A DNA stretch of 64,000 nucleotides from Eutreptiella sp. 'Long Island Sound 2002' (Eukaryota > Protista > Euglenida): assembly GCA_964036045.1 (NCBI GenBank), contig OZ038379.1:6448001-6512000 (forward strand). The letters are read 5' to 3'. A program made the translations under genes and the position numbers. The notes under the pieces were generated by a model that was not told the origin of the DNA, did not search any database, and was given only the letters and a program-made list of their open reading frames with translations. Below are positions 2,467-17,749 of the stretch, one piece after another. Numbering within the stretch: the stretch's first letter is position 1; every line of letters begins with the position of its first letter.

Positions 2467-2982
2467 CTACTTCTCTTGCCTCCAGTCAGCAAGGGCCTCG
2501 GCCCTCTCCAGCGAATTCAGGTCCACCTGCGGCGTCCCAATCCTCCGGGCATAGCCTTGAGGCGGCAGGCTCTGGATGTCGGAGATGTTCGTGACCCAGC
2601 GGGCCGCGTGCCGGTCATCGGGGTGCTTCAGTTGGTGCGACCGGAACTTGTTCAGGGCCGCTTCGTACTGCCGCTCGTTCAGCAGCTGAAGGGCCGCGCT
2701 CAGCGGGTCCTCCTCCAAAGGGGGCGCGTCCTCCACGGCGAACACCTTCTCGGGCACGGGGTTGTGGGGGTACAGCACCACGTCGACCTGGCGGGCGGCC
2801 ACGCGGTCGTGCAACAGCCCTGACATCTTCTGGTTGCAGATGATGGGCAGGTCGAGCACCATTGCCAGATCCAAAAGGTACGACACCGACCGGACGCCAG
2901 GGCCTCCCAGCGCGATCATCTTGCGCTCCGCGCTCCCTACGGCCCCGCTGGCGACATCGCCCTGCCACATGGCAACCCTCAC
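2467..2982 (-). CDS. 7TM-adenylate cyclase fusion, exon 7 (second half of pseudo-cyclase plus TPR-like helical tail, stop)
   Basis: CAG|GTG acceptor; 171 codons then TAG. VRVAMWQGDVASGAVGS corresponds to LRIGIH.G.V..G.IGS. LSAALQLLNERQYEAALNKF...PDDRHA resembles the helical hairpin that follows many class III cyclases. Confidence 0.85.
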   Translation of the reverse strand: MRVAMWQGDVASGAVGSAERKMIALGGPGVRSVSYLLDLAMVLDLPIICNQKMSGLLHDRVAARQVDVVLYPHNPVPEKVFAVEDAPPLEEDPLSAALQLLNERQYEAALNKFRSHQLKHPDDRHAARWVTNISDIQSLPPQGYARRIGTPQVDLNSLERAEALADWRQEK

Positions 2983-4175
2983 CTGGCGGGAGAGCGAGGG
3001 AGGGGGTGATGGGGGTGGAAGGCACGGAGGGACGGGGGAGAGGTATGGGTATGGGTATGGGGTGCTTGTACAGAGTACCCGGCGAGCACCACCACGTGTC
3101 TCATTCTACTGCGGTTGCCTCTTCGCACTCGTGAGGCATCCGGGGACAGCCACTGCCGTGCCTTGCATGGATGGTGCTGACAGGGCGGTCCATGTATCTG
3201 GCTGGTTACACTGTAGATCCTCACACGGTGAGGCATGCAAAGTGCCTGGTCCATGCTCTCCTGGTCCCTGCTCTCCTGAGCCATTGGCTGAGAGTCACAA
3301 GCCCGCTCTGGCAAGGGTCCTTTGCTACTCTCTTGGAAGACTGACTTGCCAAGGCGAGCCACCGGCCGGGGGGGGGGGGGGGCGGGAGAAAAATATTTTT
3401 GATACCGGGGGGGATAACTTTTTTTTCGGAGGGAACCACCCCCTGGGGGGAGGGGGGGGCGGAGGACAAAAAAAATTGGTCCTACAGGAAAAACCTTTTC
3501 CTCCCATGCCACACATAACACACACATTCATGGTGCTCCTGCTGCATAACATGCCATTGGCACTGGTCAACATTCCTATGATTGGCTATCCAGGCTACTA
3601 GCCCATCTCCAATATGCCATTTGCGACATCTAGCTGTCGGTGGCCCCTTTTCCATCTTCGGAGTACAAGTGCACGATTGAGCAAACAACGTGCATTGCCG
3701 ACATAGGTGGTATTTATGATTCAGTGCACAAAGGCCCCTGAGTACTCTCAGCTATGCATCGTGTCGTAGCCCCACCCTAGCCTCTTGTCGGCGGTAAGAG
3801 TCCCCATGCACAATGCATGGGGCGAGAAACCGGGCAAGCAACTAGTGGACCCTGCATGGGTACAATCGCCCGTCATGGGCGTTCAATAGGTGCCCCAAGA
3901 CTACTGTTGACCCCATGACATCAATCTTCCCACCCGGTCGTTACAGTATCCTTGCCACTTTGTACATGTCCATTATCTCATAGTGCTACTTGATGGACCC
4001 CACATATTCGGATAACTCGTCCTCGCCGTTCAATGGGTGCACCATGTCTGTTGTGGACCCCATGACGCCCATCTTACCACCCAGCCGTTTCACTTTACAC
4101 TGTCATACCATGGACACGGCACAGCCCTGGTGCCAATATATGGCAACTGCCCCACAATGGCCTAGTGATCTAACT

Positions 4176-4470
4176 TGGAGATTCAAGCCAGTTCACAGCA
4201 TGGAGATCCGAAGCCGGATCACACAATGGAGATCCGAAGCCGGTTCACACAATGGAGATCCAAAGCCAGTTCACACACTGGAGATCTGAAGCCGTTCACA
4301 CAATGGAGACCCAGACCCAAGCTGGTTCAAACCACGGAGATCCAAGCCGGTTCACAAAATGGAGATCCAAGGTAGTTCACACAATGGAGTTCCTAAGCCG
4401 GTTCACACAACGGAGATCCGAAGCCGGTTCACACATTGGAGATCCAAGCCGGTTCACACAATGCGGATCC
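4176..4470. repeat. Minisatellite of ~11 copies of a 25-26-bp unit (TGGAGATCCGAAGCCGGTTCACACAA)
   Basis: Units read directly from the sequence, within cyclase intron 6. Confidence 0.92.
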
Positions 4471-6060
4471 ACATTAGCTCACAAGAGTTTTGTGGGAATC
4501 CATTCAAAATACATGGCCTTGGCGTTCTTTCAAGTTGTGTCTTCAGTGGAAGGATTACGCTTAGTTGAGTAGGCCTTCTTTGTCGTGCACTTTGTCTTTG
4601 ATGTCCGATCGGAGAAACTTCGCTGGCGAGCATTTATGGCTACAACACTAGAGTTGGATGAGGAGCTAGATGATGAGGATGTGCTAGAGCTTGAGTTTGA
4701 CGAGTCGGAAGTTGGGGCATTTGAGGCCGCAGGACCACTATCCTCTTCTCTTCATCAAAATTTGAGGGTTCTGATCCCACAAATTTTTTTGCCCCCCCCC
4801 CCCCCCCCCCCCCCGTGCCACCAGCCACAAACCCCTCTTGAGCATCCCCGGGCTCCAGGCCACTTAAGACACTCTGAAGGTTAAACCCTGCTGGTCCACA
4901 AGACCTATGGTGATACTGAAGGCCATGAACAATCCCTTTGGGCTATAGCACTCATACACAGCCACACTTCAGTGAGCTAGGACACCGGGTCCCTGGCCAC
5001 CCGTGCCCAGGGGAAACCGAACTAAGCATGCATGAGACCCCTTCCCTCCCTGCCGTGTGGAAGGCAGGCTCTCCTGGAGACCGTGATTGGCAACCCCTAT
5101 TTCTTCCACTTGTTCTCACAGTGGTAGGGTTGCCTAATCTAGATAGCACCTTCCCCAGGGGTTGGCGGTCCCGGGTGGTGGAGGCCCCATGACCAGGCGG
5201 CAACACTCGGGGCAGAGGATGCGGTGTCGCAACCAATGGAGAGGTCACAATTTCATTCAAAAAGAAAACGATCCCCAAGCAAAATCCCAAACACCCCAAA
5301 AAATTCCCCAATCCCAAAACGCTTGAAGTGACCTTCACAAAGGAGCTCACGGCTCAGCAGGCCAGGCCACCAAAAGCACCGCAGGACGTCTGAAGTTGTG
5401 CAACAAAGTGATTCAACACAAAACTTAGGCAAATCCCCCATTTGACCCCCATGTTTCGTAGACCAGAATTTAGTGCGGTTTGTCCCTGACGAATTCCACA
5501 CGGATGTGTGTGGGTTCGGATCATATCACGGCCACTTCCTCGAAAATTATGACACTGCCAGTGCCCATTTGGTCTTGTCCACAAAACAAGATATGTAAGA
5601 TTCGGTTCGGAATGCATTTTATGTACCTTTCCTTTGGTGCTGGTAGTTGAAAACCCTTGGGACCTTTATCCACGGATCATGGCACATTCTTATGGATAGT
5701 CCTTCAAAAATCTGTTCTGAACAAACGCCAACGGGACGATCAGGTCTCGCCCCTTGAGCGTGTTTCCCAGACCCCCCCCCCCCCCAACTCACAAGGGCTC
5801 GAAGCCCCCCCCTCCCCCCCCCGCCCCAAGTAGCAATGGACCGCATCCCCGGGCCCCTGCAGGCCAAGGGTGAGGGTGTGTCGGGGCCTAGAGGGCACCG
5901 GTTTGGGCTCATACGCCCGCGCAGGGGAGGGCCATGCTTCGAAACAGGGGCTTCAGCCACTGGGAGAAGGCCTCATGAGTTTGTGACGATGGCACACCGG
6001 CTTCAGGGGACGCCCCAGTTACTGCGCCCCAATGCCCCGCATCCTTCGGGGCACACACAC

Positions 6061-6333
6061 CTTCACGCCCTCCAGCGCGAACGGCTCCGCAAGGTCACGC
6101 ACGATCTTGTTGGCGGCCACCACGGCCTGGGACATCACCGCGCGCTTGGCCACGTTCCAGCTGACCAGCACGTACCCCACGCCGAACTGGTCCACCACCC
6201 CCTTCGTGGACCGCGCATGCGCCGCGACGGTCGTGACAAGCTCGTTGGTGGTGCTGACCATCAGGTCCATATCGCCGGCCCCGGGGTCGTTGGGCAGGTA
6301 GGCCTTGACCAGCATGAGGACCCCGGTCCCGAC
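6061..6333 (-). CDS. 7TM-adenylate cyclase fusion, exon 6 (first half of degenerate second cyclase domain)
   Basis: TAG|GTC acceptor, AAG|GTGTGT donor, 91 codons. GVVDQFGVGYVLVSWN resembles the G.VDKFIGD...WN motif without the catalytic Asp. Confidence 0.85.
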
Positions 6334-6383
6334 CTATGCACAGGGGCACAAACTCTCCTGCTTGCTGGACACCGAGGCTGGAA

Positions 6384-7340
6384 ACACCATGACACAATAG
6401 CAACACCATCTCACAACAACACCACAATCACACAACAACAACACCACCACACAACAACAACACCATCACACAACAACAACACCATCACACAACAACAACA
6501 ACATCATACAACAACAACACCATCACACAACAACAACAACATCACACAACAACAACACCATCTCACAACAACACCACCATCTCAGAACAACAACAACACC
6601 ATCACACAACAACAACAACCCCATCACAAAACACCATCACACAACAACAACACCATCACACAACAACAACACCATCTCACAACAACAACACCATCACACA
6701 ACAACAACACCATCACACAACGACAACACCATCACACAACAACAACACCATCACACAACAACAACACCATCTCACAACAACACCACCATCTCAGAACAAC
6801 AACAACACAATCACACAACAACAACCCCATCACAAAACACCATCACACAACAACAACACCACTACACAACAACAACACCATCACACAACAACACCACCAC
6901 CACACAACAACAACACCATCACACAACAACAACACCATCTCACAACAACACCACCATCTCAGAACAACAACACCATCACACAACAACAACACCATCACAC
7001 AACAACAACACCACACAACAACAACACCATCACACAACAACAACACCATCACACAACAACAACACCATCACACAACAACAACACCATCACACAACAACAA
7101 CACCATCACACAACAACACCACAATCTCACAACAACACCACCATCTCAGAACAACAACAACACCATCACACAACAACAACCCCGTCACAAAACACCATCA
7201 CACAACAACAACACACCACTACACAACAACAACACCATCACACAACAACACCACCACCACACAACAAGAACACCATCACACAACAACGACACTCTGACCC
7301 AACAACAACACCATAACACCAATAAAACACCACAACAAAG
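6384..7340. repeat. ~950-bp imperfect CAA/CAC/CAT microsatellite-minisatellite filling cyclase intron 5
   Basis: Reiterated ACAACAACAACACCATCAC-like units, almost devoid of G on the + strand. Confidence 0.97.
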
Positions 7341-7363
7341 CACCAACAGTGGAGCAGCGGCAC

Positions 7364-7633
7364 CTTCATGCTGGCTCCAGCCCCGACCGTGGAGTACGAC
7401 ACGATGGACATCTTGGAAACCTGGCGGCCGTGCTGGGAGCTTGGGGGGCGGACTATCGTAGGGGCGGTGGCTGGCAGGGCCAGGGAGCGGCCCTCCAGCC
7501 CAATGGCGATGACTGCATACACCTTCACCGGTTCCGAGATGCCCTTCAGTTTCTGGGGCCCGCACGGCACCATCTGGGCCATTGACTTGCAGGCTTCGTG
7601 GGTCCGACGGTAGGTCTCATCGGAGCACACCAC
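7364..7633 (-). CDS. 7TM-adenylate cyclase fusion, exon 5 (end of cyclase domain 1, linker)
   Basis: CAG|GTG acceptor, AAG|GTGCCG donor, 90 codons. VVCSDETY...GPQKLKGISEPVKVY is the typical C-terminal LKG motif of cyclases. Confidence 0.92.
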
Positions 7634-7757
7634 CTGCGGCAGATGTGGATGGGCTCGGGAACAGATGTGTACCGGATGTGTACGGGCCGTGTACCTGATA
7701 TGTACCGGATGCACCCACACTCCCATGCACAGGCGCGCGGAGCAACGCACAGCACAC

Positions 7758-8063
7758 CTGCCCACCGACCGCAAGGCCGGAAACCCGCGCAGCAAGATTC
7801 ACCATGGGCCCGTAGTAATCCTTGCGCTTTGTCGTGGGGTCCACCTCAAGTTCACACATGCCCGTGTGCATGCCCATCCGCACCCGCGGCCCATTCCACA
7901 TCACGCGCCCATCCGGCAGCGCCTCCCGCCGCGCGTCGGACATGCCCAGGATCTCTGGCGGCCACTCGACCTCCAGCAGTGCCTTCTGCGCGTCGATGCA
8001 CCACATGACGGCGTTCTCTGGCTCCGTAAACGCGACCATGAAGGCGTCCCCCTCCGTCTTGAC
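7758..8063 (-). CDS. 7TM-adenylate cyclase fusion, exon 4 (catalytic core)
   Basis: CAG|GTC acceptor, CAG|GTGTGC donor, 102 codons. VKTEGDAFMVAF, GPRVRMGMHTG and DYYGPMVNLAARVSG show the Lys/Asp ATP-specifying residues and the catalytic Asn/Arg of class III adenylate cyclases. Confidence 0.95.
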
Positions 8064-8579
8064 CTGTTCGATGATGGGGCGGAGCGGGAATGCACGTGTG
8101 CGCCGGTGCACCGCAGGCGCCAAAGGGGAAGGGCAAACCGCTTTGTCGTACACCGTGAGAGAAACAAGCAACAGAACACAAAAGGTGCGTGCACGTCGAT
8201 GTGTGAACACCATCGCTCTCTGAAAAGGAGAGGCAACAGTGGAACACCCGAACGACCCCCAAGCACCAGCAAACCGTTGTTCTCCTCCGGCTTGCAGGAC
8301 ACCCGGCGCCCCTTGTCCGTGCCTCTCTTTCTGCGCAGGTGCCTATGCCTGGCCAGCCAAGGGTCTGCACCCTGTTCCCAGTCACACTTGGGCACGTATG
8401 GCACAACAGCCGTCGGCGAGAAGCGTAGACCTCCAGGGGCACCCCATGTGGTCGCACGTGCACGTGCACCACATCAGCGTTGCGGAGGATAGCGCATGTG
8501 CAAGGGTACGAAGACTCCTCTCTGCTGGACACCAAGGCTGGGAGCAAATGGGCGATGGTTCTGAGCATACTCAGTGCTA

Positions 8580-8667
8580 ACACCTGCCATAGCGGGTGTT
8601 GGCAGGTGTCACCTAATTTGACAGAGGCGCACACACACGCAATACGCAACAAATAGACACTTTGATA
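8580..8667 (-). ncRNA. Possible degenerate spliced-leader RNA relic in cyclase intron 3
   Basis: TATCAAAGTGTCTATTTGTTGCG (8667-8645) resembles the euglenid SL exon TTTCTGAGTGTCTATTTTTTTTCG as recalled. It is followed by an AAATTAGG stretch and a 10-bp perfect stem-loop (8580-8609). Confidence 0.25.
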
Positions 8668-10108
8668 CAGCCACTGAGTGCTCGATTCTCGTCAAGTTCA
8701 GCATTAAAACAAAGACATGTTCAAACTAGGCGCCTTGCTGTGAGTGGACTGAATGGTGACGAACAGCAGCCGTACTTCGGCATACCAGGCCTGAGAAAGC
8801 ACATGTATACAAAGCACATCTATAAAGCAATGCCAGGTAGGCAGTGCCACCAAAACATGAGTAGTATGGCAGCCCAGCTCACCCCCTCCCGTCCACCCAG
8901 CCCTCGACAATTTAGTCTGTGGTATTAGTCTTTGCCATTTTTTGCCCCTGTCCCCAAGGGTACCCACACACAGTGTGTTTGTGTGCCGAAGGCGCTGTTT
9001 CCAAAAGGCAATGGCCGGGATGCATACCAATGGGAACTTGTGGGTGGCAAAACTTGGGTTGCACTGGACAGACACATGGATCTCGAAACTACTGTCTGGA
9101 GCTATGTCGCTTCATGTGGTGCTCCCGTGCAGGTACAGAAGAGGGGTCGTCACAAAGACCACCACCGGTATGATACACAGGCCACCATAAGGGCTGCCTA
9201 TTCACTAGGCTACAACATGCCTTGCCCCCTTGCAAGGTTGCATGCTTGTTTCGCAAATGGCTGATGAAACATGCACATTGGAATGGCGCCAACTATGCCT
9301 CCCGGCGGCTGCCACTTGACTTGGTAGTGCAAGGCATCACAGGCAATTGTTCTGATGTCCGGAGCCTGGACATGGTCATTCACAAATGTACGAAGCCAGA
9401 CAGACACACACACATAGACATGCATGCTTCATGCTTCATGCTTAGGGCGCGGCTGCGTACAAGCCTGTGGACCCTGAGTCCCCCGCACTGGCACGTCACT
9501 GTTTGTCGCCCCCAGGAGCTGACTTCACCAGCACTCCATTCCTTAGCTGAGCAAAAACCCCGAGTGCCCCTGCTTGCCTCCAAGCCCTCCATCGCTCACC
9601 AACAGCCAGGGGGCAGTTGGACCGCCGGCCCGGTGGACCCACGTCTCCATACTGGGCCCCCAAATGCTTTCCACTGGCACCCTGTAGCACCCCAGCAAAT
9701 GGGTCATGAGCCGCATGTCGCCACCGCAGCTAGAGGGGTCCAACATGTCACTTGCTGCCATGCAGCCCAATCCACTCTGCCCAAACAGCATCCCCATCAC
9801 CGTATGTAGAGACCTGTCATGTCGCAGTGAACTGCCAACTATGGGCACCCTGCCGCGCCATACTACGCTGGGGGGCACAACTTGGCCATCCTCTTGCTGA
9901 TGCCGGTGATGTCAAGGAACGCCAAGTCCACACACGCGCGCGCGCACACACACAGCCCACATACTGACATGCGACCAATGCAGTGCAGTGAAACAGATGG
10001 GAACAAACTGATCCTGCAATGCATGCACATAACAGAGCCCCAGAGATGCCAGGTGTCACAAAAATATCTGGCAGGCGTCGGCAGAGGTGTGCAGACATCT
10101 TGGCAGAT

Positions 10109-10954
10109 CTCTCGGGGACGGTGGGGAATATGCCAACTTTCTGGGTTTTGGGGGGTCGGTGCCATTGTTGCCTCATTTGTGCCAACTGAGTGTTCCGGAG
10201 GTAGGGGTATGTGGGGTATATTTGGAAAGCCCTTGAAAAGGGCTATTTGGAACACCCCAGGTCTACATGCTGGACTGACGACAGTACAGCGGACAATGAG
10301 GACTTACAAACTGGGTTTTCAGCCACACAGACCATCAACAGAAACCTGTTTTGATCCGAGACGAAAAAGTTAAATGGCTGGATTTTGGCAGCACACCTGA
10401 CCCAGTGCATCAGCAGCCCCATCCTGGATATGTATGGCTGAAATCAGGATACAGCGAGACCATTCCCTGGCGCAAGGTGGGGTTGATCAAACGACGAAAC
10501 GTGCACCTCACAACCGATGGCCTGTGGGCCATGCCCCTTACCGAAGGTTGGGTGCCAGTGAAGGCACGGAGGTTGCAGGATTGGCAAAAGTTGAAGAAAT
10601 ATGTCCCTGTCCACAAACAGGGGGATGTGTGCCCTAATGGGGACCCAGCCCTGCCTGAAAAAAGGAATGCTGACGATGACAGTGATTCAGTGTAAAAATG
10701 GATGAACAGTGCAGTGCCATGTTTGTGTGCACCGTCCAATGTGTTGTGCTACGCTGAAAAATGTGACCCCCCCCCCCTCCCCCAACCCATACATTTCTGA
10801 AATGGCCTTTTCTTGCAGATTTGAAAAAGTATACACATAACCCCCCCCCCCCCCCCCGGGTGACGACATGTTTGCACATGGAAGCAAAAGTCGTAGAAAT
10901 TGCCGAAAAGTGCCAAAACCCAGAAAGTTGGCATGTTCTGAATGTCCCCGAGAG
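10109..10954 (+). mobile_element. DNA-transposase C-terminal remnant (Sola/DUF7869-like) bounded by ~42-bp inverted repeats
   Basis: 10160-10695 reads, with stops, GLFGTPQVYMLD..QY...NWVF...KPVLIRDEKVKWLDFG...GYVWLKSGYSE..W..V.L...PVKARRLQDWQKLKKYVP. The arms 10109-10151 and 10913-10954 are imperfect reverse complements. Confidence 0.5.
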
Positions 10955-11212
10955 TAATGTGAGAGCCAAATACACACTTGTGTGCGTTGGATGTTTGGAG
11001 GGAGGGGAGGGGCATAGCGGGACCGGGCAAGAACAAAGCACCAGACGCGAATGTGCCATGCACCGCCCAGGCCAAAGCTGGCCACCTACGCGCCATGCAC
11101 ACCGACCTACAGCAACACACTGCTGCTGCATAAACCCAAACAAACGAGCCCTGCCAACAACCCAAGAGCATGGGGCCCGTCCCTTTGTTAAGGGCATGGT
11201 CGGGGGCCAGAC

Positions 11213-11611
11213 CTCGTAGCCGTCACGCTGCGCGATGCACCGCCGCATGACGGCGTGGTGCGCCTTGACTGCCTTGCGCATGGCGGGGCCGCAGGTCTCC
11301 CACAGCACCGTACTGTTCTGGATGTCGGTGAACACGAGGGTCACGTTCTCCTGGATCTCGTCGTCGTCGTCGTCCTCTGGCCCCTGCGACTCGGCGCTGT
11401 TGAACTGCAGAACGGCGTCCGGGATGAAGGGGCGGTAGAGCTGGAGGTTGCGGTAGATCTGGATGAAGGCCAACTGAATGCGGTTGGGCTGCTCGATATC
11501 GTCCAAATACTTCAGCCGGTCCAAATCCCAACGGGACGCTGCCTCGGCGAGCTCGCAGGCCAGGGCCCCGGTCTTGTTCAGGTCGTTCAGTGAGGCAGAC
11601 ATGTAATCCAC
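11213..11611 (-). CDS. 7TM-adenylate cyclase fusion, exon 3 (linker and start of class III cyclase domain)
   Basis: CAG|GTG acceptor, GAG|GTCTGG donor, 133 codons. Contains VTLVFTDIQNSTVLW (first metal-binding Asp) and ends DGYE. Confidence 0.92.
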
Positions 11612-12300
11612 CTGCGCACACCGGCATGCGTAGAGCTAGAGAAAGCATGCGGCCTGCTGGCGCATAGCCACCCCTTTTGGATTTCCCCCTCTGCAGATAT
11701 CTGCAGTGGTGCCACCAAAACACATGGGCAGGTTCGGGCATAGATTCCAGAGGACTGGCAGTGCAGGGCCTCAGCATACAGAGCCTGGTAAGCAAAAGGG
11801 CAGCACCGGACACGGATACAGAGCGGATGCCCCAGTGCAGGCAAACGGGGCCGCAGCTGCGACTGCAGCGGGGCATGGCCGAGCAGGCCCAACGCCGATG
11901 GAGACAAGGGGACAGGCACTGGGACTGGGATCTGCTGGGGGCCCAAGGCCATGGTATGAGCCGAGCGCCCGCAGTTTACCCCTGACCGCTGGCCCGGGCG
12001 TCCCTCCTTTGATCTGGACACGGACTTGTGCCATGTACCATGCAGTAGCATTCGCTCCTGTTGCTCTCAGGGGCTGGTGTGTATGTGTGTGTGTGGAAGG
12101 GGGGGTGGGGGGCATGCTCTTCATCTCGAGGGCCGCAAAACGTCAGGCGCGACCCACCGCTATGCTCCAGCCGTGCCTGCTTTCACACGGCCATCACTGC
12201 AGTCTCAATCCAACTCAGTTTCAGTCTGTTCGTCTGTTTCTCTGTCGATGTCGATGGGGGTGTCGACAGAGCCACCTGGCTGGAACCCCTGCTCCCCTAT

Positions 12301-12908
12301 ATATATCTGGCAACTTTCCGGTTTCCGCCCCCCCCCCCCCGCCTCCCCTTTTGATTGGGTGGGCTTTGGGGGGCAAATAGGGACCACCCCCTTGTTTTGA
12401 GGTTGGGGGACTCAAATATACATGTCTTGGAAGCTATTTGGATGGCGCGGGGTATCGAAGCCCATGAAGGGGTTGGAAGGGCTAAAAATGGGGTATAATA
12501 ACATCACTGCTGACAAAATCCCAACTATAGCACCAAAGATAGGGGGAATTAGAATGAAAAAGCCCAAAACTCTTACCCCTAATATGAATATGTACAGCAT
12601 AGGACCAAAGATGGGTGAGGCAAATACTTCCCATTATTCACTTATGGAGGTATATAGGGGGAATGTGTACTATCAGGAGAAAAATGGCCATTTCTGGTAC
12701 TCTGGTGAGGATCCCAACAGCAGTGACGTCATACCCTTTTTTCGCAGGCCCTGCTGCCTGCTGGGGCCTTATACCCACCCGCAACCCTCCAAAATTGTCC
12801 CAAACTCCCCACCCCCCAAAAGGGGGTGTGTGGTACCCCTCTAGCGATACAAAGCCCACCCGACAGCGGGGGAGGTGGGGGGGCAGAAACCGGATAATTG
12901 CCATATAT
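12301..12908. mobile_element. ~610-bp MITE with ~30-bp imperfect TIRs and TA-rich ends, in cyclase intron 2
   Basis: Left ATATATCTGGCAACTTTCCGGTTTCCGCCCCC versus reverse complement of the right arm ATATATGGCAATTATCCGGTTTCTGCCCCC (12879-12908). Confidence 0.65.
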
Positions 12909-13017
12909 CTATTTATCGGTCCATCGACCATTTTATTATCATTTTACATCGGTTTCCATTCACTTTCATTGTTCATTCTTCAAATCAATTCGTTCCAAAC
13001 CATCACTGGGGGCATAC

Positions 13018-13353
13018 CACCAGAGAATTGATCAGCACATCCACCATACAACACGACCAGCACGTGTGGTTCTTGATGCCATGATAAAATAGCGCCAACG
13101 AGAGAATGTTGGCAAACGACACCGACGTGGACACAGTGGCGGCCACCAAGTTTCTGCGCAACGTCCGCATCACCAGGGCGCTGTCCTCCCCTTCCTTGTC
13201 CTTGTGCTTCAGCAGAGGCATCAGGAACAGCACCGTCATGTACATGCTGAAGAGGGTGTCATAGCACAGCAGGGGGATGGATGAGGCCCGCTTCAGTCCG
13301 ATGTAGCAGTGCTCCCCTCTGATGTCAGAGACCTCCCACAATAACATAGCCAC
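13018..13353 (-). CDS. 7TM-adenylate cyclase fusion, exon 2 (end of TM4, ECL2 Cys, TM5-TM7)
   Basis: Acceptor CAG|GTG and donor GTG|GTATGC. 112 codons: VAMLLWEVSDIRGEHCYIGLKRASSIPLLCYDTLFSMYMTVLFLMPLL...CMVDVLINSLV. Joins exons 1 and 3 in frame. Confidence 0.85.
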
Positions 13354-13799
13354 CTGCGAGCATGAGGGCAGCTGAGCGGGGCGGCATATTCCGTACCAAT
13401 GCCCTCATTGTGTGTGCCCCTGTGGTCCCATCAATGCTTTACAGCTGCAACAGAATCCGGTTGCTTCAGCGGCTAAAGCACGCGACTCCGACAGCAAAGG
13501 TCCTGGGATGGAACCCTCCAAAGGCTGCTACTACTCGACTGCGGCAGGAGCAAGGCCCGTGGCCCTGGTCAGGGCACGAAACCCGACCTGCACTCGTGGG
13601 TTCAAGCCCGCACGGGGTCGATGGCCAACAACCACCGGGGTCACCAGGAGTCCCTCAGGTGCCCTGCAGGAGCAAGAGAACTTACGCATCCGGCCTCAAG
13701 TGTTGTTTGAAGCAGCTCTGTCCAGGACCTGCACTCATCATAGGCTGCTGCCCGGCCGAGGCTGGGAACTTGGCCCCGGGTGCATCAGATGAGACCACA

Positions 13800-14590
13800 C
13801 CCCACGGCGCCCTGCACGGCACGGCACGGAATGGCCCCTGCGCCGCGCCGCACCCCACCATGCCACACGGCACTCCAATACACTACAGAACACGACAAGA
13901 TACGGCACTGCAATGCTGCACTACAGTACGCTGTACTACACTGCACTACCCCTCGCCCCCTTGGGCAGTAAGCACCTGCACGCAACGGTATCCTCGCACC
14001 CCGAGCGAACATTCCCCAAGTGACAGTTCCCTCGCCCCCCCCTCCCCCCATTTACTGTGTAAGGGACGCGCGACACGGAGCAAGACCTGCAGACACGTAG
14101 GTATATGGGCCACAAAATGCCCGGAAACTGCCTGTTGGGAGGAATGTTCAGCTCTACTGAGCAGCAGGCTCTGTGTGCCACTTTTTCTGGCGCGAGTATT
14201 TTGCTTTCGTAATGTACAACGTTGTCCGTGCTCTTCCCTTTGCTAGCCACCATATTCAGCACGTGAGGCACCGTGAGCATTGCCTTCTTAACTTCCTTGT
14301 GAACCCTCGCATTCCATTCATCCTTTCAATAAATACTGGGGCGAACTTCAGCCTTCTAAGAAATTTTGGAAAACGGAAAGTGACAGTTCCCTAGCCCCCC
14401 CCCCCCCCCCCCGCCGCCGGCTTATTATTCAACGGCGCTTACTATTCGAGGGGGGTGCACTGCAAGGCACTCCAAGATACGGCACCGCAGCACTGCACGG
14501 CACTGCACGGCACTGCACGGCACTACAGGACCATACACAACACGGCGCTACAACACATCACTGCAATGCACTGCACTGCAGGACGCTACA
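13800..14590. repeat. Degenerate (CACTG/CACGG)n tracts near both ends of cyclase intron 1
   Basis: Tracts at about 13800-13960 and 14455-14590. The motif AAGTGACAGTTCCCT followed by a C-tract recurs between them at about 14017 and 14377. Confidence 0.7.
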
Positions 14591-14600
14591 CGACACACAC

Positions 14601-15140
14601 CAAGATGACTCCGTATGGCAGCAGCAGTAGGGCGTTTCGCCTCAAAACGGGGTCTTTAATGTGGGGCACCTTTGGGCAGGTCACCAGATGCACCTTCGCC
14701 ATCAGGAAGATGTACACCACCAACTTGTTCGAGGCGTACAAGAAGGCACAGGCCCACAGCCCCATCCGGCACCACCACACCGACCGGAGCGCAAAGAGGC
14801 CAAACAAGATCGTGGTAAAAGCGAACAGCCAAGAGCACGTGAACGACACCAGCACAAGAAACTCGATGACCATGGGTCGCCCGGCGCGCAGCTTCGCCTG
14901 CGACAGCCGTTCGCCCGCCATGAGCGAGACCAACGTGATGGTTCCCGGTGCTGAGACCATGTGGGAGATCTGGTGGCCCAGGCCGCTGGCAGTGAACACC
15001 ACCAGCAAAACGCCCACGACATACCGAAGGTTGATGTTCGGGACAGGGGCACATGTGCGGGTGTCTTGGTCCTGGGCTTTGACCGGGAGTTGAGGCTCCT
15101 CTGGGCCTGGGTGGACACTGGACGCTTTTCTCATGGACAT
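14601..15140 (-). CDS. 7TM-adenylate cyclase fusion, exon 1 of 7 (N-terminus, TM1-TM4)
   Basis: ATG at 15140, preceded by a pyrimidine tract and CAG (AG at 15161-15160). 180 codons with hydrophobic segments YVVGVLLVVFTASGLG, IEFLVLVSFTCSWLFAFTTILFGLFAL and GLWACAFLYASNKLVVYIFLMAKVHLV. Donor TTG|GTGTGT, phase 0. Confidence 0.8.
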
Positions 15141-17749
15141 TTTGTGATAGAACGATGAACTGCGGAGGGCAGTGCAAACAGTTGACTGCTGCATAAATGA
15201 CTGCAATCTGCAAATCTGCATTGAATCGGAAACCCGTGGTTTCTGTTCAGTATTGCCTTTGGCGCTCGTCAATGGCCGTCTCACTTCGCACCAGCACCTC
15301 ATGCACACACCTCAGACACACGGACACCGTCGATAGTCGGAACGTCGCCAATAAAGGCATGTGAGTCTTCAGCCCTGTCAACACACTGTGATGGTTTTCA
15401 AGGGGGACTGCATGTCTCCGCCCGATGACAGTTTACGCCATTAACCCGAAGCATGGACACTGACGTCTTCATTGACGCCGTATATACTCACTTGAATTAA
15501 TATTCAGTATTTATTGATATTTAATAATGATATTTAACGTGTGTTCAATTTTGTGACCAAATGATGTCAAAGTAGTACCCCTCGACAATGTTATCGGAAG
15601 CCATCACAGACAGACCAGTTCCATGCTTTCTGTTGTCCTGCATGATTATTACAGGTGTCAATTTCAGACGTGCATCAATCTGCAAAGTGAATCCACATAT
15701 ACAACAGACCAGAATCTGCAACCTAGATAGTAGTCCCCATTAGTGTCTGCTTCCTGTCCATCATGATAACCAAACCATCATGGTGCTGTGTGTAACACAC
15801 AGACAAACCACAAAACCCCAGACTATCAATCACCTCGACAAACACCTTTCGCTGTTCTTTTGCTGAGCAATCGACACAATGAAGAATTACAATTAGCTTC
15901 TTCCAAAGATTGATGCAGAACAACAAGGCTGATCTTGAATCGTCAAAAATGGCAGGCCGCACACTAAGGGCTGCAAGAGACCAAAAATCGTGTATACCGG
16001 GGGGAGGGGGTTGAGGGGGGGGGGGTTTGAGGCACCCACCCACCCAGGAACCCACCCAGACCCCCCCCCTCTTATAAACATTGGAGGGGCGGATTGAGGC
16101 GCTCTCCCAAGGTTGAACAGCACCCCAGCCCCACCTCCCTTTGAGGTGATGCTACCACAGCTGCAGAAGCACATGGTACCGCCTTTTTGTGTTGGTTTCG
16201 TACTTTTCTGATTTTTTTCTGGGTTTTGTGCCTTTTCTGCCTTCTTTTTTTTGTATTTTTGAAGTCTTTTATCGCTGATGCTTATGCTGCATGGGTCCTT
16301 GTGTTGGGTTGTTGATCCCTCGGCTTGGGCTTTGGGGAAAGGGGGGCCATGGTGGTATGGCGGTGTAGTTAGGGTTTGTCGGTCTCTGAGTGTTCACCGC
16401 TACTGCTGCCCTGAGGGTTGTTGCTTCTCTTTTCGTTGTTGTCATTGTCGCTGCTACTCTGATTGCACAAATGAGGCTTGTGTTGTGGCTCCTGCTGGCT
16501 TGCGTCTTGCGTGGCTTGCCTTTGTCAGACCAGGCTTTCCTCTTCTTTCTCTGCTTTCCGTTTCCCGAATAATCTCATTAGAATGCGGATACTCCACCCA
16601 ATCTGCTGCATCCATCAACAAGATGAGCTCCTGCTCTGTGTGGTTCTAAGATAACTGAGGATGCGAATCAACACTTTGTGTAACTGCAAGAACAGACGCT
16701 CCATGGTGGCATTTGCGGGGGCGATGGCCAACAATAGTCGGGCAAAAAGTGTGTCACGCTGGGAAAGTGGTCTTCTACAAGATAACGGCCTTCAGAATGT
16801 GCACACAAGCATCATTGTCTGTGTTCTTGTGGAACTCCTTGACACTAGCCCACTCCTTGACAGCGTCATCAACCTCAACCCCATGGCCACACAACCATTT
16901 TGCCCAGCATCCTACCAAGTCCTACAAAAGTCCACTGGCAAACAATTCCAACCGGTCGGAGGGCTCGTGGTCCCCATCAACAATCTTCGCAAAACACACC
17001 ACATACTTGGAGTTGGCAAACCGAGTGGAAACTTGTTGTAGGATAGTGGAGCGGCGTCCACGTGTTGTTTGGCCTCCTCTAGCGGTGCTTGCATGATGTG
17101 GTGTAGTACCCAGTCTTGTTCAGTGAATTCTGGTGTACAGGCTCCGGCTGATGGTTGCCATCCTTGAGCTTCGTCACAAGGCTTCAGATGGCTTGCTCGC
17201 GATCAGCCCACTGTCCCTGTGCTTGCGCTGCAATTCCTCCTATGCAGCTGCGACCAAGTGCAACATGCATAGCAGCCTTGCCCGGAAAACAACAAATGTG
17301 CCCACCATCAGCAGTGCCAAGCTTGCCTTCCACACCTCTTTTTCCTTGGCCTCCTCACTCAGTTGCCGCACAGTCTTCCGCACACCACTGTCCCGCTGCA
17401 GAAAGTTACCCATGACAGTGTCAATCTTCTAGACCAACGTGTTAGGATTATTCGCTGCAGTGCATGATCGCCATCACTTGCCATGTCCTCCAAGGTCAAA
17501 CTGTGCACCCCCGATTTCATGATCATCGTTGTTGTTCTCGGACAGCCACCAAATAGAGGGGGCGGGGGGGGGGCTAGACTGCAGACCCACACACCCAAGC
17601 GATAATTGTAAAGGGAGGGGGGGGGTCCCAAACTTTTGGCCCACCCACCCAGGCTGGGGCACCCACCCAGACGCCCACCTCTTCCATATTAATTCCTTAT
17701 AAATGATGTCTGCAGAGACACAACCAGTAGCACAACAACATAGCAGAAC

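Follow-up and report, generated by a model that had tools for sequence, protein, structure and literature searches.

Introduction

Proteins in which a seven-helix sensor is fused directly to a cyclase are rare, and the known cases are the rhodopsin-cyclases and the predicted G-protein-coupled receptor (GPCR)-adenylate cyclases (GPCR-ACs) of oomycetes. In the rhodopsin-guanylyl cyclases of Blastocladiomycota, eight helices, one of them an extra N-terminal one, are followed by a helical linker and a class III cyclase; these proteins form dimers with direct coupling of sensor to enzyme, hold retinal on a lysine of helix 7 and produce cyclic GMP. Trypanosome receptor cyclases cross the membrane once and carry a large extracellular domain. 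The oomycete GPCR-ACs, or 'bigrams', are represented by four predicted and uncharacterised gene models in Phytophthora infestans and were proposed to bypass G proteins (PMC5784254, PMC6033456); according to a 2018 survey, they are restricted to oomycetes (PMC5784254). Here we describe a gene of Eutreptiella sp. 'Long Island Sound 2002' that is predicted to encode an 879-residue euglenid membrane adenylate cyclase, probably one in which a sensor-like helical bundle is wired directly to a catalytic domain. The gene lies in a 64,000-nucleotide stretch of contig OZ038379.1 (positions 6,448,001 to 6,512,000 of the forward strand), referred to here as the window, and its coordinates are given as positions in this window.

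The predicted euglenid protein resembles the oomycete GPCR-ACs in combining a receptor-like domain of seven helices, towards the N-terminus, with an adenylate cyclase towards the C-terminus of the same chain. It differs from them in coming from another supergroup, in its additional N-terminal helix, in the trypanosome type of its catalytic domain and in the presence of a second, degenerate cyclase-like domain. The architecture has a precedent in the oomycete predictions (PMC5784254, PMC6033456). None of the 20 database matches of exon 1 whose source was looked up was an oomycete protein, and no direct comparison of the membrane parts was made. Unlike the trypanosome GRESAG4 enzymes, which it resembles in the catalytic domain alone, the euglenid protein has eight helices and almost no extracellular mass. 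According to its genome paper, Euglena gracilis has a large cyclase family that includes HAMP, cache and BLUF architectures; GPCR, G-protein and 'seven' were not found in that paper by a term search, and literature searches on Euglena together with G proteins or seven-transmembrane cyclases yielded nothing specific. A first-pass annotation, made from the letters of the window, had placed the gene in a kinetoplastid context. This framing is wrong because the organism is a euglenid, as indicated by the many cis-introns, the spliced leader and a relative in Entosiphon.

Results

Gene structure and transcription

Independent joining of the exons gave seven exons on the minus strand, from 15140 to 2467, that together encode 879 residues (Table 1), reproducing exactly the model of the first-pass annotation. 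All introns have GT..AG ends, all exons start in phase 0, and the stop codon is TAG (2469-2467). The sequence motifs that had been singled out earlier were also confirmed in place, with WWCRMG at residues 122-127, KVHLV at 149-153, EHCYIG at 194-199 and MRTLRRN at 242-248.

Thirteen public runs were listed for 11213-15140, and 11 of them hold part of this stretch. RNA from four runs was mapped on 11100-15400 in the form of assembled contigs, not single molecules. In two estuary metatranscriptomes, the contigs within the gene cover exons alone. The first intron is skipped exactly in contigs of two runs, with 221-255 nt on the sides of the joint, and the second intron is likewise skipped exactly in contigs of two runs, with sides of 45-47 nt; both joints have GT..AG ends on the strand of the gene. 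The contigs bearing the two joints overlap by about 31 nt. A 194-nt loose end at 11210, observed in one run, reads AAGACGGAGGGGGACGCC... on the gene strand, which is the start of exon 4. The single transcript linking membrane and cyclase exons that had been proposed in the first-pass annotation is thus borne out for exons 1-4, and the opposite case it had named, transcription of exons 1-2 apart from exons 3-7, does not hold for these four exons.

The 5′ end was reached by a contig of a run whose species label is that of the genome; this contig covers 14758-15160 and ends in 23 loose letters, TTTCTGAGTGTCTATTTCTTTTC on the gene strand. The loose letters are spliced-leader-like and are joined at 15160; we take them to be one base off the Euglena spliced leader. 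With the leader joined at this position, the mRNA begins some 19-20 nt upstream of the ATG at 15140, the first AUG that it contains.

RNA contigs also pile up within intron 1, at about 14124-14285, where they align at 90-95% identity with a summed depth of about 55 to 257 in three runs. The loose ends of this pile-up lead into unrelated sequence, and it looks like a dispersed expressed repeat outside the gene.

Paralogs and a homolog in Entosiphon

An exhaustive protein search with exon 1 found at least two further copies in the same ENA assembly, L001 and L002, and the 879-residue model was mapped on both loci. L001 contains exons 1 and 2 followed by residues 293-876 in one uninterrupted open reading frame (ORF), at 56% identity. 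L002 contains exon 1 (split in two), exon 2 and exon 3 in the same order up to the contig end. The domain order is therefore found in three genomic copies. As exons 3 to 7 correspond to a single exon in L001, nothing is missing between them in the window copy and the reading frame is real. The C-terminal tail (residues 791-879; 2470-2736, minus strand) is kept with the paralog only (78.8 bits). It is predicted to be helical at low confidence, and by eye it looks like a single TPR-like hairpin.

The single exon of the paralog, L001:16091-17836, stands against four introns in the corresponding part of the window copy, which suggests that introns were recently gained or lost in this gene family. 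The end of L001 also carries an ORF with a reverse-transcriptase domain (RVT_1).

A transcript-derived homolog of 818 residues, P0004, was found in the heterotrophic euglenid Entosiphon sulcatum and shows 38-39% identity over the membrane part. Over the linker, the window protein has 41% identity to P0004 residues 269-343, and in P0004 these residues directly adjoin transmembrane helix 7 (TM7); the continuity of helix 7 and linker is apparent when NALVVDYMADVMKDL of P0004 is set against NSLVVDYMSASLNDL of the window protein. After the linker, P0004 has a Ser-rich stretch and a degenerate cyclase-like domain with no intact catalytic domain, and it may be a pseudo-cyclase version of the family.

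The seven-helix core and its relatives

Pfam analysis of each exon gave matches in the cyclase exons alone and none on the membrane exons. A search of 1.84 billion proteins with exon 1 returned 51 matches at E<=1e-3 (best E 3.7e-10), and residues 1-292 matched the listed stand-alone relatives with 77-133 bits across all seven helices. These relatives are mostly 300-450 residues long, are named 'hypothetical' or 'transmembrane' and have no enzyme attached. They come from Mortierellomycota, Basidiomycota, Ascomycota, a chytrid, the raphidophyte Heterosigma and MMETSP protists; examples are P0007 and P0006 (MMETSP), P0009 (Entomortierella), P0008 (Dendrothele) and P0011 (Heterosigma). Pfam scanning of 36 relatives identified no family on the seven-helix part and no GPCR family, and comparison of the family profile with PDB sequences retrieved no solved receptor (best E 0.89, unrelated). 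Word searches returned only the gene's own fragment, P0001, for exon 1, and for the family profile seven proteins, none of which had an informative name or a Pfam match. By these sequence comparisons, the seven-helix core is a member of an unnamed eukaryotic family that lacks a Pfam model and is mostly stand-alone.

Features from the ESM Atlas gave weak fungal leads for exon 1. DUF7703 was rejected as a candidate for this exon, as its Atlas feature scores (0.76-0.88) were below the trust line and Pfam did not confirm it. One family member, P0010 (Mortierella sp., 679 residues), has a seven-helix part and an apparent F-box/LRR-like C-terminal part; weak F-box-like and LRR Pfam matches (E about 1e-3) occurred in one of the 36 scanned members and were assigned to P0010 from its sequence. 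Judging from P0010, the seven-helix bundle may be joined to other outputs elsewhere.

Conservation was determined by column counts over the 38-40 non-euglenid members of the family alignment. Six residues invariant in these members are present in the window protein (C124, C131, Y135, K139, C196 and C278), as are seven near-invariant ones (Y143, G199, D212, F223, N262, C282 and D285). Two of the invariant residues, C124 at the top of TM3 and C196 in the second extracellular loop (ECL2), are the cysteines that the first-pass annotation had placed at the positions of the GPCR disulfide; they are invariant in 39-40 non-euglenid relatives and may form such a pair. The window protein thus resembles the stand-alone proteins in being homologous over the seven helices and in having the same invariant Cys, Tyr, Lys, Asp and Asn. 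It differs from them at the cytosolic face: the stand-alone members, mostly without an enzyme, keep the motif E(K/R)VH and an Arg in the second intracellular loop (ICL2), whereas the window protein has Ala in place of the family-invariant Glu (AKVH, E148A) and His in place of the Arg (R160H). Both losses are common to the two paralogs, and Entosiphon retains the Glu. The KVHLV that the first-pass annotation had put at the DRY-equivalent position overlaps this altered motif.

Topology and fold of the membrane part

Eight hydrophobic segments were found, not the seven counted previously. The segment that had been taken for TM1 (residues 38-58) is an extra N-terminal helix: in the alignment it is specific to euglenid proteins, and the first helix of the core is the weakly hydrophobic segment 62-80, which brings the number of helices to eight. 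The loops between helices have 3-17 residues. A cytosolic C-terminus, as proposed before, is required by the cyclase, and the distribution of Lys and Arg agrees with it, as the three loops inferred to be cytosolic contain 9 of these residues against 5 in the outer ones. The N-terminus should in this case lie in the cytosol as well, provided that helix 0 is not cleaved off as a signal.

As a stand-in for the window protein, P0004:1-345 was modelled using the family alignment, and the model had a predicted local distance difference test (pLDDT) score of 86.3 and a predicted template modelling (pTM) score of 0.81. It contains seven long helices after the N-terminal one, with a beta-hairpin (ECL2) between TM4 and TM5; TM7 extends as one helix to residue 295 and is followed by linker helices. 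All 50 of the PDB matches listed by Foldseek were GPCRs, with E from 3e-4 and template modelling (TM) scores of 0.33-0.60. The VIA search, which does not lean on Foldseek, gave Z 17.7 for a designed GPCR-like fold, Z 15-17 for microbial rhodopsins (root-mean-square deviation (rmsd) 2.9-3.5 over 201-233 residues) and Z 14-16 for Ste2, P2Y1 and GABA-B. When the Foldseek list was realigned, Z was 14.4-16.6 both for receptors and for WLS, an eight-helix protein whose match takes in the N-terminal helix too. Shape matches in the ESM Atlas were, in order, unnamed fungal clusters (TM score 0.64-0.72), P2Y6 and bacterial seven-helix sensor kinases. As modelled on this proxy, the membrane fold is a GPCR/rhodopsin-type bundle and not a transporter, the fold that the first-pass annotation had named as a refuting outcome; structure scores alone do not choose between a GPCR and a microbial rhodopsin. 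The description 'GPCR-like' therefore stands for the fold of the P0004 model but not for family membership, for which the Pfam and PDB profile searches were empty.

Catalytic domain, linker and second cyclase-like domain

Exons 3 and 4 each matched PF00211 above its cut-off of 21.9 bits (Table 1), and the paralog scored 91.3 bits over profile positions 7-179 of 183. Mapping by motif and by alignment of the paralog to 1FX2 located all six canonical adenylate-cyclase residues, namely D388 (FTD), D431 (GDA), K427 (VKT), D507 (KDYYG), and N514 and R518 (VNLAAR). The cyclase thus appears intact, in agreement with the first-pass annotation, and the Lys/Asp pair (K427/D507) points to ATP as the substrate. 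The cytosolic fold was modelled on the single exon of the paralog, again as a stand-in, and a search with the whole 606-residue model gave matches to the first cyclase domain alone. The closest solved catalytic domains are those of Trypanosoma brucei GRESAG4.1 and GRESAG4.3 (1FX2 and 1FX4), which are also euglenozoan and are 32% identical to the paralog (E 3.7e-29 for 1FX2; Z 26.3 and rmsd 2.4 over 206 residues for 1FX4). In common with GRESAG4, the euglenid domain has an inserted segment between the two halves of the catalytic domain.

The linker ends with the motif YRPFIPDAVL, which resembles a conserved element ahead of many class III catalytic domains. Weakly similar versions, YRPFLPDSLF, YRPYLPNTLF and YRRYLPDAL, are present in diplonemid and other cyclases whose membrane parts are quite different.

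A second domain, absent from the earlier account, occupies residues ~618-790. Pfam gave no cyclase match on exons 6 and 7, hhalign comparison of this domain with a profile of first domains was not significant (probability 0.3), and none of the six catalytic motifs was recognisable in it by eye. The paralog model shows at 323-420 the beta-alpha-beta-beta-alpha-beta order of the cyclase fold (pLDDT 62-85). By Atlas language-model features, nearly all of the 40 nearest clusters are cyclases (score 0.92), and the Entosiphon counterpart matches PF00211 at E 0.013, below the cut-off. With moderate confidence, we regard the second domain as a degenerate cyclase-homology domain on the basis of the model and these features.

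Tandem cyclase-homology domains and a conserved helical element before the catalytic domain are also found in the mammalian membrane adenylate cyclases (6R3Q, 1CS4), whose membrane parts (2 x 6 helices) are unrelated to the euglenid bundle. The catalytic residues of the mammalian enzymes are divided between C1 and C2, giving one site per chain. In the euglenid protein all six lie in the first domain and none in the second, so that pairing of the two within a chain would yield no active site.

Features of the locus

The positions and contents of the exons are collected in Table 1.

Table 1. Features of the predicted receptor-cyclase gene in the window.
Feature	Position	Strand	Content and support
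Trans-splice acceptor (AG), spliced-leader addition site	15160..15161	-	~19-20 nt upstream of ATG; genome ...CCGCAG|TTCATCG
Exon 1, residues 1-180	14601..15140	-	ATG at 15140, donor GTGTGT; joint 14601|13353 in two RNA runs; hydrophilic N-terminus 1-37, extra helix H0 38-58, core TM1-TM4; C124, C131, Y135, K139, AKVH 148-151
Exon 2, residues 181-292	13018..13353	-	RNA joints at both ends; 39% identity to Entosiphon P0004 residues 150-268; TM4 end, ECL2 with C196 (EHCYIG), TM5 (D212), third intracellular loop (MRTLRRN), TM6 (N262), TM7 (C278, C282, D285, N289)
Exon 3, residues 293-425	11213..11611	-	TM7 end, helical linker 298-380 (YRPFIPDAVL, acidic run), cyclase start (VTLVFTD, D388); PF00211 27.2 bits; RNA joint 13018|11611
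Exon 4, residues 426-527	7758..8063	-	Cyclase core K427, D431, D507, N514, R518; PF00211 46.9 bits
Exon 5, residues 528-617	7364..7633	-	Cyclase end (~residue 570), low-complexity spacer; colinear with paralog single exon
Exon 6, residues 618-708	6061..6333	-	First half of putative degenerate second cyclase-like domain; colinear with paralog
Exon 7, residues 709-879 and stop	2467..2982	-	Second half of putative degenerate domain (to ~790), predicted helical C-terminal tail; paralog-aligned through residue 876

Several introns contain repeats. Intron 5 has a 19-nt unit, AACACCATCACACAACAAC, repeated about 50 times at 6383-7332, and this repeat gives rise to a spurious plus-strand ORF of 541 residues (5836-7461) rich in HNNNTITQQQ. 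Intron 6 has a 26-nt tandem array at 4176-4470 with about 11 copies and a 79% match. Runs of 12-20 G on the gene strand recur in several introns, for example near 14400-14420, 12330-12345 and 10850-10870.

Discussion

The reading that we favour as probable is that of a predicted membrane adenylate cyclase with a sensor-like bundle wired directly to its catalytic domain. Its parts would follow one another as extra helix, seven-helix bundle, linker continuous with TM7, trypanosome-type class III domain, degenerate cyclase-like domain and helical tail. A stimulus sensed by the bundle would be passed through the TM7-linker helix to the catalytic domain, perhaps independently of G proteins as the first-pass annotation had proposed. 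In class III sites one domain provides the metal-binding Asp residues, and the other the base-specifying and transition-state residues. Since the second domain lacks the six residues and a class III site is formed across a dimer, catalysis should need two chains that each contribute an intact domain to the pair. Control of this pairing is the probable role of the degenerate domain, which could serve, for example, as an internal decoy partner. A more specific version, which we consider distinctly unlikely as a whole, is that euglenids independently fused a stand-alone seven-helix receptor class to a cyclase and that the degenerate domain acts as a decoy until the receptor signals.

Several observations weigh against the favoured reading. 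The RNA joints reach exons 1-4, and the joints of exons 4-5, 5-6 and 6-7 are taken from the single exon of the paralog. The loss of the Glu and of the ICL2 Arg in the window copy and its paralogs makes the cytosolic face unlike that of the stand-alone family. As P0004 has no intact catalytic domain, the module of seven helices and linker would not always drive a cyclase. The predicted fold comes from a homolog of 35-38% identity and not from the window protein itself. The cyclase likeness of the second domain is suggested by a weak model, language-model features and a sub-threshold Pfam match, and profile comparison was negative.

The same losses of Glu and Arg would suit a bundle that senses nothing and serves to anchor, localise or dimerise the cyclase, for instance at the flagellar or plasma membrane, with regulation acting on the cytosolic domains. 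We regard this alternative as unlikely, though the least so of the rivals. No ligand site is known for the seven-helix family, and the same linker-cyclase cassette occurs on unrelated membrane parts in other euglenozoans. On the other hand, the cysteines of the extracellular side and five buried polar residues (K139, D212, N262, D285 and N289) are kept as in the stand-alone family, and in the model TM7 and linker form a single helix, as is usual in signal-transmitting cyclases. A true GPCR, acting on heterotrimeric G proteins while its attached cyclase is controlled in parallel, is improbable in our view. The Foldseek list, in which every match was a GPCR, and the presence of E(K/R)VH, the family motif, at the E/DRY site of class A receptors would suit such a protein. 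The absence of any sequence match to a GPCR family by Pfam or PDB profile speaks against it, as does the AKVH of the window copy in place of EKVH, and the cytosolic face runs straight into a bulky cyclase.

A light sensor of the rhodopsin-cyclase type, with eight helices, a helical linker and a cyclase, is close to refuted. Microbial rhodopsins equal GPCRs in the VIA search, and the rhodopsin-cyclases have a similar layout with an extra N-terminal helix. However, helix 7 of the window protein, CWSCCMVDVLINSLVVDYMS, contains no Lys, nor does the family consensus CLxxCxxDVxxN, which makes a retinal pigment very unlikely and sets the protein apart from the rhodopsin-guanylyl cyclases, as does the Lys/Asp pair with its apparent preference for ATP. 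Moreover, the beta-hairpin connects TM4 with TM5 instead of TM2 with TM3, and neither the window exons nor the 36 scanned relatives have a Pfam rhodopsin match. Least credible of all is that the fusion is an artefact of the gene model, in which two neighbouring genes were joined. The exons are parted by introns of 1.2-3.1 kb and the joints were seen on contigs instead of single reads, but exons 1 to 3 are joined exactly at GT..AG ends in two runs and exon 3 is read through to exon 4 in one. The two paralogs also have the same order, and a separate euglenid transcript contains the seven helices and linker contiguously. An artefact is thus refuted for exons 1-4, which leaves room for an alternative short isoform alone.

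The gene and its at least two paralogs extend the receptor-cyclase fusion design to Euglenozoa, in which the receptor cyclases known so far cross the membrane once. A complete catalytic domain combined with a fully degenerate one also represents a testable regulatory design. The membrane family has no name, no Pfam model and no known function, and because an apparently intact cyclase is attached to it here, cyclic AMP output could directly assay the stimulus of the seven-helix family. If the protein is indeed a receptor fusion with an internal decoy, the fused enzyme would be a natural reporter for what this fungal and protist family senses.

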